Shown: positions 25,451 through 28,426 of the stretch, in pieces
Layout of the letters: each line of letters opens with the position of its first letter
How positions within the stretch are numbered: position 1 is the stretch's first letter
Sequence record: ON529852.1
Strand: one strand, 5' to 3'
Length of the DNA stretch: 64,000 nt
Translations under genes and position numbers: made by a program
The notes under the pieces: generated by a model
The model's database searches: none
Seen by the model: only the letters and a program-made list of their open reading frames with translations
Told to the model about the DNA's origin: nothing

Positions 25451-26536
25451 ATGAGCGGCACTGACCTGCGCGTCCGCGCGCATTTGACCTATTCCGTCAC
25501 GTCCTACCAGGATACCGGCAAGACCGGCACGAGCCGGGAAGTAGGCTCCGGCTTCACGGCTGACGTCGCAAACGAAATCGCGGAGGCCGTACATGCCGTC
25601 GCCGACGCCCCGCGCGACCTGACCCTGGTTGACGTCACCGACGCCACTTATGAAATCGCGAAGGCTGCGCATCGCGTCAGTCAGATCGTCGACGCCCCTG
25701 AAGGGACAGCCTACCTCATTGAGCGCCTGTCCCCGCGCCAAGTCCGCCTGACCGAAGTCACGCCGCAAACGCAGCGCTACACGATCGACGCCACGGTCTT
25801 GGACCTGAAGAGCAGCCTGGGTAACCTCCAGACCGTCGCCGATACGGTCAAGGATTCCATCATGCGTGAGATCAGCCGCATTAACCTGCCCGAGCGGTGG
25901 GATGACCTGTCGAGCGAGACCACCCGGCGTGGGCTGGAAGCCTTCATGGCGGTCCAGACGGTGGGCAAGGATGCCTGGCGGGATCATGAGATCGAGGGGA
26001 TGGTGAATCGCATCGCTCAGCGGACCGGCAAGGCCAAGGTCGACCTGCGGCGCATGTTTGAGAACGCCCAGGAGCGGGTGATGGAGGCCAAACGCATCCT
26101 GGCGGACGCCGTCCCGACCAAGGCGCCCCTGACCGCGCGTGAAGAGCACTACTGCAAGAACCGCGCGAAGGGTTGCACGCCCCACGACGCGGCGCGCTAT
26201 GCGGGGTTCCTCAACGATCCGACGTCGTCGTTCAATACCGCACTGCTGGAAAACTCACCCCCGATCCAGGCGCGGATCGCGGAACTGATCACCGCCAAGG
26301 CGCCCGCCGCAACCCCGACTACGGCGCAGACTCCGCCCAACGGCTCCTACCGCCTGGACAACGCCACGCAGGAGTTCTTCGCCATGAACATCGGCTTCTA
26401 CGGCATGACGGTCGAAGCGGCCGCCAAGCAGATGAGCCTGCCGCTGGAAACAGCGGACGGTCTGATGCAGATGCCGTCGGTGGAGGCGCGGATCAAGTTC
26501 TTCCAGCGCTGCGCCGCCTGGGGCGAACGCGGATGA
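25451..26536 (+). CDS. Hypothetical protein with C-terminal TerS-like HTH repeats
   Basis: REEHYCKNRAKGCTPHDAARYAGF matches TerS RNELYARHRAKGMNAAKAAMAAGY. Confidence 0.7.
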   Translation: MSGTDLRVRAHLTYSVTSYQDTGKTGTSREVGSGFTADVANEIAEAVHAVADAPRDLTLVDVTDATYEIAKAAHRVSQIVDAPEGTAYLIERLSPRQVRLTEVTPQTQRYTIDATVLDLKSSLGNLQTVADTVKDSIMREISRINLPERWDDLSSETTRRGLEAFMAVQTVGKDAWRDHEIEGMVNRIAQRTGKAKVDLRRMFENAQERVMEAKRILADAVPTKAPLTAREEHYCKNRAKGCTPHDAARYAGFLNDPTSSFNTALLENSPPIQARIAELITAKAPAATPTTAQTPPNGSYRLDNATQEFFAMNIGFYGMTVEAAAKQMSLPLETADGLMQMPSVEARIKFFQRCAAWGERG

Positions 26537-26766
26537 AGCGCCTGTTCGATGACGCCCAGAACTGGACGCTGGACGGACAGGAGGCCCTGCGGATCGCCGG
26601 CACGCATATGCGGGCGGCGGTCGCTGAACTGGTCGCGGCGGGGTTCTCCTGCCGCGACGCCGGCCTGGTCCTCCACGAGGAGGTGACGATGTCGGTCGCA
26701 TTGCACCACATCGCACCTCCGCTTCGGGCGAACGTCGAGGCCTTCCGCGCGGAAGGTCCGCAATGA
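26533..26766 (+). CDS. Hypothetical protein, paralog of 26763-27110
   Basis: MKRLFDD..W vs MKRVFDD..W. Confidence 0.6.
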   Translation: MKRLFDDAQNWTLDGQEALRIAGTHMRAAVAELVAAGFSCRDAGLVLHEEVTMSVALHHIAPPLRANVEAFRAEGPQ

Positions 26767-27110
26767 AGCGCGTCTTCGACGACCACGGCCTCTGGAACCC
26801 GGAGGCTCACGCCGCCGGGCTCCGGGCGCTGCCCCTAGTGAAGCAGGCGTTTGAACTGCTGCTGGGCGAGGGCTACAACCCGCGCGAGGCGCAGGCGCTG
26901 CTCAACGCCACGGTGGATGAGGAGACGCTGGACCGCATCCTTGTGGTCAAGGAGCGGCTTCGACTGAAGCAGGCCGGGCACGCCGAGGCTGAGCGGGTCG
27001 GAAACCTGCGCCGGCATCTGCCGTTCCCGCCGGCCGACCACCCCGTCTTCACGCCCGAGCACAAGCAGAAGGCCTTCGATCTGGTGCGGCCTGAAGGCGA
27101 ATCGGCATGA
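26763..27110 (+). CDS. Hypothetical protein
   Basis: ATGA overlap; paralog of upstream gene. Confidence 0.6.
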   Translation: MKRVFDDHGLWNPEAHAAGLRALPLVKQAFELLLGEGYNPREAQALLNATVDEETLDRILVVKERLRLKQAGHAEAERVGNLRRHLPFPPADHPVFTPEHKQKAFDLVRPEGESA

Positions 27111-27382
27111 GCCCTGGATACAAGGCGGTCGCGGTCCAGGACGGGTTCCTCCGAAACCGATACGGTTATGAGCAGCGCGTTGCGCCCGGCTGCTTCACCA
27201 TTGTGGACGTGCACGACAACCCGATCCGCACCCACGACGGCTTCGCGACCTTTTCCAGCCTCAAGGAAGCGGCCTGGTGCGCCGAGTTGATGCAGGGCGC
27301 CTTCTTCGAGGGCGAGGCCAGCGTCAAGGCGGCCATGCGCAATCTGCTCGACATCCCGGAACCACCGGACGACGAAGATTGA
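27107..27382 (+). CDS. Hypothetical protein
   Basis: ATGA overlap. Confidence 0.6.
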   Translation: MSPGYKAVAVQDGFLRNRYGYEQRVAPGCFTIVDVHDNPIRTHDGFATFSSLKEAAWCAELMQGAFFEGEASVKAAMRNLLDIPEPPDDED

Positions 27383-27389
27383 TGGCGGC

Positions 27390-27419
27390 TTGACGGTATG
27401 GAGGCGGTCGTGCTAAACA
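27390..27419 (+). promoter_or_regulatory. Host-type promoter for the tRNA locus
   Basis: TTGACG-16-GCTAAAC, resembling the Caulobacter housekeeping consensus. Confidence 0.7.
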
Positions 27420-27426
27420 ACGCCTC

Positions 27427-27459
27427 ATGCTGACCGCCCTGAGACTCAGGACTGCCTAA
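27427..27459 (+). CDS. Putative leaderless leader peptide MLTALRLRTA (Arg codons AGA, AGG)
   Basis: ATG at the predicted +1; TAA forms the base of the terminator stem. Confidence 0.55.
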   Translation: MLTALRLRTA

Positions 27460-27486
27460 GCGCCCCAGACCACCGGGGCGCTTTTT
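27458..27486 (+). terminator. Intrinsic terminator immediately 5' of tRNA-Arg
   Basis: AAGCGCCCC/GGGGCGCTT stem plus TTTTT. Confidence 0.85.
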
Positions 27487-27487
27487 C

Positions 27488-27562
27488 GCGTCCTGGGTGT
27501 GTTGGACAGCACGTTCAGCTTCTAACTGGAAAGGCCGGGTTCGATTCCTGGAGGACGCGCCA
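27488..27562 (+). tRNA. tRNA-Arg(UCU)
   Basis: Full cloverleaf: GCGTCCT/AGGACGC acceptor, G73, CCA, loop CT-TCT-AA, A20, GGTTCGATTCC. Confidence 0.93.
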
Positions 27563-27601
27563 TCGCTTGACACCACTTGAGGCGCGTGCATCATTCTTTC
27601 T

Positions 27602-27847
27602 ATGAAGAAACACCCTGACCCATGGTGCGGCGTCGGAGCCTTGCGCGCGCTCCACCACCCCTACGCCGCTAAATCGTTTCCAGGCGCCACGTACCTCCGT
27701 ACAGAATTTTGCACGGTATTCGATAAGTGGACCACCGTATATCAGGACGACAAGGGGCAAGAGTGCGTGATGGTTGAGATGTGGCAAGACCCTGAGGGAA
27801 AGACCGGCCGTATGGCGGTCATCAAACCGCGCGGCGTGCTCCACTAA
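27602..27847 (+). CDS. Hypothetical protein, probably leaderless
   Basis: TTGACA at 27567, -10 near 27589-27595, ATG at the predicted +1. Confidence 0.6.
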   Translation: MKKHPDPWCGVGALRALHHPYAAKSFPGATYLRTEFCTVFDKWTTVYQDDKGQECVMVEMWQDPEGKTGRMAVIKPRGVLH

Positions 27848-27848
27848 T

Positions 27849-27899
27849 CACTCCTGCGCTGCGCGCCGTCGTGCCCGGCTCCGCCGGCCGCACCTCCGG
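27849..27899 (+). repeat. Dispersed double-hairpin element
   Basis: CACTCCT-GCGC(TGC)GCGC-CGTCGTGC-CCGGC(TCC)GCCGG. Confidence 0.85.
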
Positions 27900-27922
27900 T
27901 CGATAACGCCCAGAATGACCAC

Positions 27923-28078
27923 GCCCGGCACAGCCGATACGGCTGATCCCGTTCGGGAACATTCGCCCCAAGCCCGGCACAGCCGATACGGCTGATCCCG
28001 TTCGGGAACATTCGCCCCAAGCCCGGCACAGCCGATACGGCTGATCCCGTTCGGGAACATTCGCCCCAAGCCCGGCAC
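27923..28078 (+). repeat. Perfect tandem repeat, 3 x 49 bp plus 9 bp
   Basis: Unit GCCCGGCACAGCCGATACGGCTGATCCCGTTCGGGAACATTCGCCCCAA starts at 27923, 27972, 28021, 28070. Confidence 0.95.
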
Positions 28079-28265
28079 GGCCGCAGCGTTTTGATCCCGA
28101 ACGGGATCACGCCGATGGTCGCCATATCATCCGCAACGGCCGATACGGGTTGATATGGGCGCCATCAGGGCCGGCGGGCAGTCGAGGCGGATGCATCAGA
28201 TATGACGCACGGGCTACGGCTGTCGGTATGTTTGACACCCATCGCCTGCTGTGTCATGCAGAGGG

Positions 28266-28426
28266 ACGGCTTCAGCCGCTAGGCTTTCGGGCCTGCCTGC
28301 TGACCGCATGCGGCGTGATGGAACCTGCGAGGCGCGGGCATTGCGCGGCCTAGTCCCGGATTACCGGCTGGAAAGATCGGGGCCTGCCCTGTGATCCGCT
28401 CGGCGCGTGCCCGGAGTGCGGTCAGC
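28266..28426 (+). ncRNA. Candidate structured RNA E
   Basis: TTGACA-17-CATGCA (28232-28260); UUCA and UUCG hairpins; 10-bp helix GCTGACCGCA/TGCGGTCAGC. Confidence 0.5.

Follow-up and report, generated by a model that had tools for sequence, protein, structure and literature searches.

The gene for tRNA-Arg with anticodon UCU in Brevundimonas phage vB_BpoS-Kabachok (ON529852.1) lies directly behind a short unit that consists of a predicted promoter, a 10-codon open reading frame (ORF) with one AGA and one AGG codon, and an intrinsic-terminator-like hairpin. This arrangement is read here, with a probability of roughly 40%, as a minimal leader-peptide attenuator that would gate the sole Arg tRNA gene of the phage, with readthrough favored upon successful decoding of the two Arg codons. 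Kabachok has a genome of 356 kb, belongs to the Dolichocephalovirinae and has B. pondensis LVF1 as its host; the stretch analyzed (64,000 nucleotides (nt), hereafter the window) is identical to positions 1-64000 of the record, and window and record coordinates coincide. A match between leader codons and the tRNAs encoded downstream is observed in three leader families, two of which lie outside the window. The chances stand about even that the giant and jumbo phages of Caulobacterales (Dolichocephalovirinae) control tRNA operons by leaderless leader-peptide attenuators with cognate codons. The proposed family would comprise AGA/AGG for tRNA-Arg(UCU), GAA/GAG/GAU for tRNA-Glu and tRNA-Asp, and an Asn/Val/Gln/Ile (or Phe) run for a Val-Ile-Val-Gln-Asn(-Phe) operon.

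The tRNA-Arg(UCU) leader

A tRNA-Arg gene is found at the corresponding place in six relatives. Over leader and tRNA, Domovoi, Marchewka, Papperlapapp and Bambus are 83-98% identical to Kabachok, with which they form the Kabachok type; in Kikimora and Gurke (the Kikimora type), the match to Kabachok is limited to the hairpin and the tRNA, and the flanking genes are unrelated. These seven Brevundimonas phages were the only matches when leader plus tRNA was searched by blastn against 50,697 phage records. In Kabachok, the unit comprises the following elements:

27390-27395, + strand: -35 hexamer TTGACG of promoter P1, predicted from sequence and invariant among the five Kabachok-type phages
27411-27419, + strand: extended -10 element TGc-TAAACA (TGc 27411-27413, TAAACA 27414-27419), with TGCTA invariant in the seven phages
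27427-27459, + strand: leaderless 10-codon ORF (MLTALRLRTA, then stop), its ATG 7 nt past the -10 element at the predicted transcription start
27442-27444 (AGA) and 27448-27450 (AGG), + strand: AGA-CTC-AGG, two invariant codons read by tRNA-Arg(UCU) with one codon between them
27438-27450, + strand: small hairpin CCTGA-GAC-TCAGG over both Arg codons, -4.0 kcal/mol, present in the minimum-energy fold
27458-27486, + strand: intrinsic-terminator-like hairpin and T-run, with a 9-bp stem and an 8-nt loop, -17.6 kcal/mol
27488-27562, + strand: tRNA-Arg, anticodon UCU, CCA encoded (ARAGORN; Rfam RF00005, 44.1 bits against a gathering score of 29)

All of these elements stand, base for base, in the order and place given by an earlier note on this DNA. 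P1, a predicted promoter of the host type, has an 18-nt spacer that ends in TGc, and 7 nt separate its -10 element from the ATG (27427). The ORF reads ATG CTG ACC GCC CTG AGA CTC AGG ACT GCC TAA, with AGA and AGG placed 16 and 10 nt ahead of the terminator base. The first two bases of the terminator stem (AAGCGCCCC/GGGGCGCTT, 27458-27483) are the AA of the TAA stop codon; the T-run occupies 27482-27486 and is followed by a single C (C27487) and then by the tRNA, which starts 4 nt past the stem. In the predicted fold, the first 11 nt of the transcript are unpaired. The small hairpin over the Arg codons, whose counterpart in Kikimora and Gurke is CUGA-NNN-UCAG in a different register, is possibly a pause hairpin or a 5' structure. 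A simple consensus scan called neither P1 nor the terminator, its rules demanding a T at the last -10 position and counting a T-run only past the longest stem.

The upstream operon (25451-27382) has its stop at 27382, and no other terminator lies between this point and the tRNA in Kabachok-type phages. Because that operon ends at 27382, the terminator abuts the tRNA, and the next promoter-like site stands 5 nt past the tRNA, there is no space for a promoter belonging to the tRNA; the local layout thus bears out the view of the earlier note that none could fit between terminator and tRNA. Without a promoter of its own, tRNA-Arg(UCU) would therefore be made only by readthrough.

The promoter-to-ATG geometry of this unit recurs in the phage. 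The succession of TTGAC, 16-19 nt, a -10 element, 7 nt and ATG is found at at least 10 annotated Kabachok gene starts (14422, 33263, 56262, 160008, 165082 and 275301 among them), and it also heads the two other Kabachok tRNA-operon leaders described below. The composite pattern TTGAC, N16-19, TGnTA, N11-12, ATG, which was picked post hoc, occurs once in the window against 0.01 expected. Transcription is predicted to start at A27427, and the ORF may be translated from there. Caulobacter possesses 375 leaderless mRNAs, which are translated as well as leadered ones, and leader-peptide attenuation is documented there for the ilvBN leader and also for the trpS upstream ORF (PMC4117421).

Both Arg codons of the leader are rare in the phage. 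Among 14,501 annotated codons (coding sequences of window positions 1-50000), AGA occurs 4 times (0.28 per 1000) and AGG 32 times (2.2 per 1000), AGA being the tied second-rarest sense codon in the phage's genes; the rarity that the earlier note gave for the host group is thus seen in the phage's own genes. Kabachok has 24 tRNA genes (PMC10070969), of which tRNA-Arg(UCU) is the sole one for Arg and the sole one outside two clusters (193.5-194.9 kb and 265.1-274.4 kb). A tRNA for AGA is thus encoded by a phage whose own genes hardly use this codon, and the abundant CGC and CGG codons have no phage tRNA. Simple codon-supply reasoning fails to explain tRNA-Arg(UCU). Chance occurrence of the codon pair was estimated from 778 ATG ORFs of 8-14 codons in 300 kb of Kabachok, of which 3.3% hold both AGA and AGG and 0.5% hold an in-frame AGA-x-AGG; the 10-mer AGANNCAGGA has a frequency of 2e-5 per nt in the Kabachok genome. 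Because a single genome is only suggestive, the weight rests on the conservation of the leader and on the parallel leaders.

A codon-phase pattern kept in two lineages

Kikimora and Gurke agree with the Kabachok ORF at 17 of 33 positions without gaps, so that about half of the positions differ, and they possess a separate strong terminator of their own upstream of the leader. Kept in both phages are TGCTA in the -10 element, a 10-codon ORF, AGA-NNC-AGG, the overlap of stop codon and hairpin, and a tRNA 4-6 nt past the stem. The ORF reads ATG CTG ACG ATC AGA CAC AGG ATG ACC GCT TAG in Kikimora and ATG CTG AAA ATC AGA CGC AGG ATG ATC GCT TAG in Gurke, and in both the last two bases of the stop codon open the hairpin. 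The sequence CATGCTGA is invariant in the seven phages; its A lies 7 nt past the -10 element in Kikimora and Gurke, where 6 bases intervene as against 7 in the Kabachok type.

Neither AGA nor AGG varies in any of the seven phages. Conservation of the Arg codons at homologous loci, a check named beforehand in the earlier note, is thereby found in two lineages, and the link between Arg codons and tRNA recurs in the second of them. Between the lineages, the codons are offset by exactly one codon (positions 6 and 8 versus 5 and 7), with the length of the ORF unchanged. The codon between them is CTC, ATC, ACC, CAC or CGC; as only its third base is fixed, the pattern is one of codon phase in which the amino acid is free, rather than an RNA motif. 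The leader peptide itself is unconserved (MLTALRLRTA, MLTIRHRMTA, MLKIRRRMIA). All nine terminator pairs are kept in the seven phages, with one compensatory change from G-C to A-U in Gurke relative to Kikimora.

Two other explanations of the conserved CAGGA were considered and rejected. A Shine-Dalgarno-like pause site has no start codon at a working distance and leaves AGA unexplained, and a CsrA-type GGA motif leaves AGA unexplained as well, CsrA being generally not expected among hosts of this group. Further relatives of the Arg leader were sought in IMG/VR, metagenomes and GTDB genomes by pattern scans based on the tRNA D-arm/anticodon signature or on the leader itself; the only matches were unrelated low-GC phage tRNAs, Planctomycetaceae contigs from metagenome-assembled genomes and one intragenic chance match.

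The tRNA-Arg(UCU) gene of the Kabachok type exists in two alleles, one in Kabachok and Marchewka and the other in Domovoi, Papperlapapp and Bambus, with many compensatory differences in the acceptor, anticodon and T stems. That all five phages nevertheless share one leader suggests recombination ending at the terminator.

Cognate leaders of other tRNA operons

The earlier note had proposed that short ORFs ahead of terminator-preceded tRNAs in related phages be examined for codons matching the anticodon. When the heads of the other tRNA units of Kabachok were searched, cognate codons were found in two leaders, both outside the window:

ON529852.1 265993-265826, - strand: leader V, a 31-codon leaderless ORF ahead of the Val-Ile-Val-Gln-Asn tRNA operon
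ON529852.1 273475-273376, - strand: leader E, a 20-21-codon leaderless ORF ahead of tRNA-Glu(UUC) and tRNA-Asp(GUC)

Leader V is annotated within the hypothetical protein KABACHOK_04190, whose annotated start overlaps the -35 element. Its promoter reads TTGACA, N17, TAAACG, 7 nt, ATG, and its ORF (MFTYR-NNVQQIQVV-...) reads ATG TTC ACC TAT CGC AAC AAC GTG CAG CAA ATT CAG GTC GTC CGG TTT AAC CGG GCG GGC ...; a strong terminator follows, and then tRNA-Val(GAC), tRNA-Ile(GAU), tRNA-Val(CAC), tRNA-Gln(UUG) and tRNA-Asn(GUU). Nine consecutive codons of this leader (Asn, Val, Gln and Ile) are read by exactly the five tRNAs of the operon. No other run in the six reading frames of 300 kb is as long, the codon set making up 17% of phage codons, and the probability of such a run by chance is about 3e-6 per ORF. 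Leader V is conserved across the Dolichocephalovirinae, in seven distinct sequences (Kabachok type, Gurke, CcrPW, CcrColossus, CcrBL10, Bajun and RB23), with Karma as an eighth; a scan of IMG/VR for more copies returned 95 matches, of which the 4 real ones were the isolate genomes again.

The layout of leader V is the classical one of helices 1:2, 2:3 and 3:4, and its 1:2 hairpin, GUCCGG/CCGGGC, covaries. Region 2 (CGGGCGGGCC, within the ORF) is a near copy of the 3' arm of the terminator and therefore can pair with the 5' arm. The resulting 2:3 helix is 96% paired, compared with 52-56% when slid by one column, and contains two compensatory pairs; helices 1:2 and 3:4 contain four, a number equalled in 0-1 of 500 shuffles. 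Under standard ribosome footprints, a stall at the last four codons of the run would free region 2 and lead to readthrough of the trp type.

The identity of run position 2 follows the composition of the operon in part. It is Asn in five phages whose operon carries tRNA-Asn, and Phe in Karma and in an IMG/VR relative of CcrBL10 (L085), whose operons have tRNA-Phe and lack tRNA-Asn. CcrBL10 likewise has Phe at this position, though ARAGORN called no tRNA-Phe in its operon, and RB23 has both tRNA-Asn and tRNA-Phe as well as both codons in leader V. A perfect covariation of leader codons and operon was rejected, as it holds for Asn versus Phe but fails for Arg: Gurke has CGC in the run and an operon without an Arg tRNA. 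The tRNA-Arg(tct) of CcrBL10, its IMG/VR relative, Bajun and Karma, considered as a third lineage of the Arg leader, was also rejected, being of another sequence type and having no such leader; it lies amid tRNA-like sequences where the leader-V operon ends. In Kabachok, a tRNA-Tyr(GUA)-like sequence that ARAGORN did not call lies between the leader-V terminator and tRNA-Val (about 265700-265790, - strand). The homologous position is annotated as tRNA-Tyr in Gurke and Bajun, and one Tyr codon occurs in every leader-V ORF read.

Leader E reads TTGACA, N16, ATACAA, 7 nt, ATG ... TAC GAA CGA GAG GCC ... GAT ACG ACC GCC GCC TAA, and tRNA-Glu(UUC) and tRNA-Asp(GUC) lie 34 nt downstream of it. Six copies were read (Kabachok, Gurke, CcrBL10, CcrPW, Karma and Colossus), five of which have GAA-CGN-GAG plus GAT; Gurke has GAG-CGA-GAG and keeps GAT. 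A pair of codons for a U34 tRNA with one codon between them is the same design as AGA-NNC-AGG. The last eight codons of leader E form the 5' arm of a three-helix terminator-like stem with three covarying pairs and with the stop codon in its apical loop, a stem that is annotated as a terminator in Karma; GAG lies 11-12 nt before the base of this stem, as in the geometry of the Arg leader. The leaders lean to wobble-read or minor codons (ATT, CAA, GAT and AGG), as would be expected of a sensitive sensor.

Karma and Colossus have annotated terminators ahead of tRNA operons. In Kabachok, a strong terminator is also located 10 nt before the tRNA-Pro operon (about 272140-272400, - strand), and upstream of it lies a conserved small ORF rich in Ser, Leu, Pro, Lys, Thr and Ala (45 aa in Karma, gp083), many codons of which are read by the Pro, Lys, Leu and Ser tRNAs of the operon. 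This ORF is a weaker, fourth candidate leader, whose codon match could be explained by its low-complexity composition.

Mechanism, direction and rival explanations

In the mechanism proposed for the Arg leader, host RNA polymerase would start at P1 on the A of the ATG, and the resulting mRNA, being leaderless, would be open to a 70S ribosome at once. The position of the first ribosome while the terminator is being transcribed would then decide whether the hairpin forms. Prompt decoding of AGA and AGG would bring the ribosome onto the stop codon, where it would cover the 5' arm and allow polymerase to read into the tRNA; were the ribosome to stall at either codon, or were none present, the hairpin would stay free and transcription would stop. 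The output of tRNA-Arg(UCU) would in this manner be licensed by working, charged AGA/AGG decoding, a self-reinforcing arrangement that resembles stringent control.

The geometry was modeled by footprint masking, in which a footprint reaching 15 nt upstream and 12 nt downstream of the first base in the A-site codon was hidden and the remainder of the RNA refolded. With the ribosome held at AGA, the terminator is predicted to stay intact in 7 of 7 phages; with the ribosome held at AGG, the Kabachok type would lose three bottom pairs but the Kikimora type none; and with the stop codon in the A site, the 5' arm would be hidden entirely in each of the seven. Translating ribosomes of E. coli suppress almost entirely a terminator that lies a few base pairs past a stop codon (PMC4824070). 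Since loss of the terminator in these models requires a ribosome at the stop codon or close to it, a gated terminator is the simplest reading. Some form of translation-gated termination is accordingly graded as probable, with this probability shared a little unevenly between the two possible directions.

The Arg leader contains no upstream copy of the 3' arm of the terminator that could serve as an antiterminator (a 2:3 helix); it is therefore not a four-region attenuator of the trp type, and its direction is left to geometry. A candidate antiterminator taken from the masked folds, a pairing of codons 3-5 with the 3' arm, was rejected as unconserved and confined to the Kabachok type. The weaker alternative pairing described in the earlier note, CTCAGG/CCTAAG, does exist as sequence, but it is mismatched at an inner position, none of the predicted folds contains it, and the Kikimora/Gurke lineage lacks it. 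The caution of that note that sequence would not settle the direction is upheld, geometry favoring readthrough upon decoding only slightly.

An attenuator of the same kind but opposite sign, which the earlier note had preferred, would make the tRNA on demand: a ribosome stalled at AGG, when tRNA-Arg(UCU/CCU) is scarce, uncharged or cleaved, would come to rest against the terminator base or within it and block completion of the terminator, and an unhindered ribosome would leave and allow the hairpin to form. Leader V speaks for it, since it has the classical architecture in which a stall gives readthrough and a common purpose for the leaders would be parsimonious. An NNG codon is also found 10-13 nt before the stem base in both Arg lineages and in leader E, where the front edge of a stalled ribosome would lie, and the three bottom pairs that an AGG stall is predicted to strip in the Kabachok type are those beside the T-run, which matter most for termination. 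The phage moreover encodes functions for tRNA and translation maintenance at 72093, 88795, 92562, 114393, 128448, 148407, 169469, 189176 and 266812 (annotations of the record itself), including peptidyl-tRNA hydrolase (Pth), tRNA-His guanylyltransferase, a CCA-adding enzyme, seryl-tRNA synthetase and another aminoacyl-tRNA synthetase, as well as RtcB, an RNA ligase, an Asp/Glu-tRNA amidotransferase subunit and peptide deformylase; the repair and maturation members (RtcB, RNA ligase, CCA-adding enzyme and Pth) fit pressure from tRNA-targeting defenses (PMC10264068). Geometry nevertheless disfavors the on-demand direction, because an AGG stall would strip no pair in Kikimora and Gurke and an AGA stall none in any phage. 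There is also no alternative antiterminator structure, and the hairpin should already be blocked by a ribosome that has reached the stop codon (PMC4824070), which leaves no evident occasion for termination behind an unhindered ribosome. This direction is thus considered unlikely, although it is a serious competitor.

Explanations other than an attenuator fare less well. The hairpin could be an ordinary leaky terminator or insulator with an incidental ORF, which would end the upstream operon (25451-27382), might stabilize a 3' end generated by RNase P and would let the tRNA be made by constitutive partial readthrough. The lack of any other terminator behind that operon in the Kabachok type is in line with this idea, as are the terminators that precede the tRNA-Pro operon and the tRNA operons of Karma and Colossus and the 3.3% of short ORFs in which AGA and AGG co-occur by chance. 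However, the promoter-like box, ORF, AGA-NNC-AGG and hairpin persist in Kikimora and Gurke although these phages have an upstream terminator of their own; the sequence between the two Arg codons varies in codon phase, conservation extends to the ATG and to its distance from the -10 element, and leaders V and E display a like match of codons and tRNAs, all of which renders an incidental ORF improbable. Even less probable is a stand-alone transcript of about 58 nt whose adjacency to the tRNA would be secondary, acting as a base-pairing small RNA, as a lambda bar-like minigene that traps host tRNA-Arg, or through its 10-residue peptide. A promoter, about 60 nt and a terminator are the standard layout of a small-RNA gene, the blocks conserved in the transcript are AUGCUGA and AGAnnCAGGA, and Rfam gives a sub-threshold match to the small RNA ncS54 over 27426-27489. 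This match (21.7 bits against a gathering score of 43) is far under threshold and driven by the terminator, and tRNA alone exceeded the threshold among known RNA families in the Rfam search of the locus. In E. coli, tRNA-Arg is sequestered as peptidyl-tRNA by AGA/AGG codons near the start of an ORF and by short minigenes, an effect that Pth, also encoded by the phage, counteracts (PMC2490762). The effect peaks at codons 2-3 and in shorter ORFs (PMC2490762), however, and the leader lacks the form of a toxic minigene (2-8 codons with the rare codon last before the stop), having 10 codons and 2-3 more codons after the rare ones. The peptide sequence is unconserved, and a stand-alone transcript would leave both the missing tRNA promoter and the tRNA-mirroring leaders V and E unexplained.

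Several points weigh against the favored reading, an attenuator with readthrough upon decoding. Besides the lack of an antiterminator, the T-run varies across the phages (TTTTTC, TTTTCG, TTTTGG, TTCTTG and TTTACT), and its weak forms in several relatives (TTTACT, TTCTTG) may mean that the hairpin is a poor terminator or has another role. Polymerase has only about 60 nt to travel from start to terminator; without a pause of polymerase, a ribosome may not load on the leaderless 5' end fast enough. That the distance from AGG to the hairpin differs by one codon between the lineages speaks against a stall mechanism with exact steric requirements. The leader-V operon of CcrBL10, Bajun and Karma ends in a different tRNA-Arg(UCU) behind a leader without AGA or AGG, and the codon match is therefore not universal; the logic of leader V, in which a stall would give readthrough, would also be opposite to the direction favored for the Arg leader. 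Finally, the Arg leader is known from two independent lineages only, its five Kabachok-type copies being near-identical, and with both codons in 3.3% of short ORFs by chance, the evidence of the Kabachok genome taken singly is only suggestive.

Relation to known regulatory systems

Leader-peptide attenuation is the textbook control of amino-acid operons. Two traits of such attenuators are found in the Arg leader, namely codons that match the regulated product and an intrinsic terminator, at which termination is predicted, between leader and regulated gene. As in the trpL, hisL, leuL, pheL and ilv leaders, a short promoter-proximal ORF contains reporting codons, a terminator precedes the regulated genes, and ribosome position would set the hairpin; of the phage leaders, V alone has the full 1:2/2:3/3:4 layout of these systems. 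Unlike in amino-acid operons, the gated genes are tRNAs, the mRNA is predicted to be leaderless and the system is phage-borne, while the Arg leader has two regulatory codons and no antiterminator. Closer in form are the E. coli pyrBI leader and rph-pyrE, in which the ORF ends at or inside the terminator, a close ribosome prevents the hairpin and uncoupling leads to termination; the Arg leader ORF likewise ends within the terminator in 7 of 7 phages. The pyr operons respond to polymerase pausing at U-runs when uridine triphosphate is low, whereas the variable in the Arg leader would be ribosome speed at two rare cognate codons.

T-box riboswitches resemble the proposed Arg attenuator in that a leader acting in cis responds to the state of one particular tRNA by switching a terminator. 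They bind uncharged tRNA directly by RNA-RNA pairing, without translation, and control synthetase and amino-acid genes, mainly in Firmicutes. No T-box match was obtained from Rfam at E<=1 within 26800-28400, and the Arg leader is just 60 nt long. Phage lambda provides rare-Arg circuits: AGA AGG occupies codons 3-4 of int, which depends on argU, and the bar minigenes are linked to Pth. These share with Kabachok an early AGA/AGG pair in a phage ORF, the supply of tRNA-Arg(UCU) and peptidyl-tRNA hydrolase, but they act on translation yield and tRNA sequestration, with no terminator or tRNA gene downstream. In Streptomyces, the bldA tRNA-Leu(UUA) and adpA form a positive loop via the mRNA of a transcription factor with a TTA codon; synthesis of a rare-codon tRNA in a high-GC genome is similarly tied to decoding, but the Streptomyces loop has no cis-acting leader and terminator.

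Genes for tRNA are usually thought to be controlled at their promoters (growth rate, stringent response) and by processing. Full-text literature searches of a partial library found no published leader-peptide attenuator of tRNA genes, which is absence of evidence only and agrees with the earlier note, whose author knew of none on a phage tRNA gene. The class of mechanism is known; what appears to be new is that it would act on tRNA genes, through codons that the gated tRNA itself reads, on leaderless transcripts of phages. If the proposal is correct, tRNA supply would be under feedback from decoding by the tRNA itself, and no loop between decoding and supply could be shorter. It would then bear on the roughly fifty-year-old question of what phage tRNAs are for, be it codon supply, a stringent-like brake or matching, or counter-defense; the sign of the response to depletion, charging or cleavage of the tRNA would separate codon supply, a stringent-like brake and on-demand counter-defense. 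The three leaders, one of the classical four-region form and two minimal, would further represent compact, portable sensors of codon-specific translation speed in alphaproteobacteria.

Downstream neighborhood

At 27567-27847, beginning 5 nt past the tRNA, a promoter-like site (TTGACA, N16, CATCAT, 7 nt, ATG 27602) heads a leaderless 81-aa ORF, which is unannotated in Kabachok and annotated in Marchewka. The segment is missing in Domovoi and Bambus, and Papperlapapp has in its place a gene annotated as 'RNA polymerase'; the site directly after tRNA-Arg is an insertion hot spot. A Pfam search of eight neighboring proteins yielded nothing informative, the 81-aa ORF being without a match.

An element of about 60 nt (27848-27905; ATCACTC..TGCGCT.CGC..CTCGTG.CCGGCTCCGCCGGCCGCACCTCCGGTCG) is conserved after the tRNA in all lineages and is pushed away from it by the inserted ORF in Kabachok and Marchewka. 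Its hairpin, CCGGC/GCCGG, is replaced by the compensatory CTGCC/GGCAG in Marchewka, and it may be the 3' processing or termination signal of the unit. Further downstream, a gene-free stretch of 580 nt contains at least 3 tandem copies of a 49-nt repeat (CCGGCACAGCCGATACGGCTGATCCCGTTCGGGAACATTCGCCCCAAGC; 27919-28109), with an inverted copy of the repeat core, TGATCCCG..CGGGA, at 28092-28109; related repeats are present in Domovoi and Bambus.

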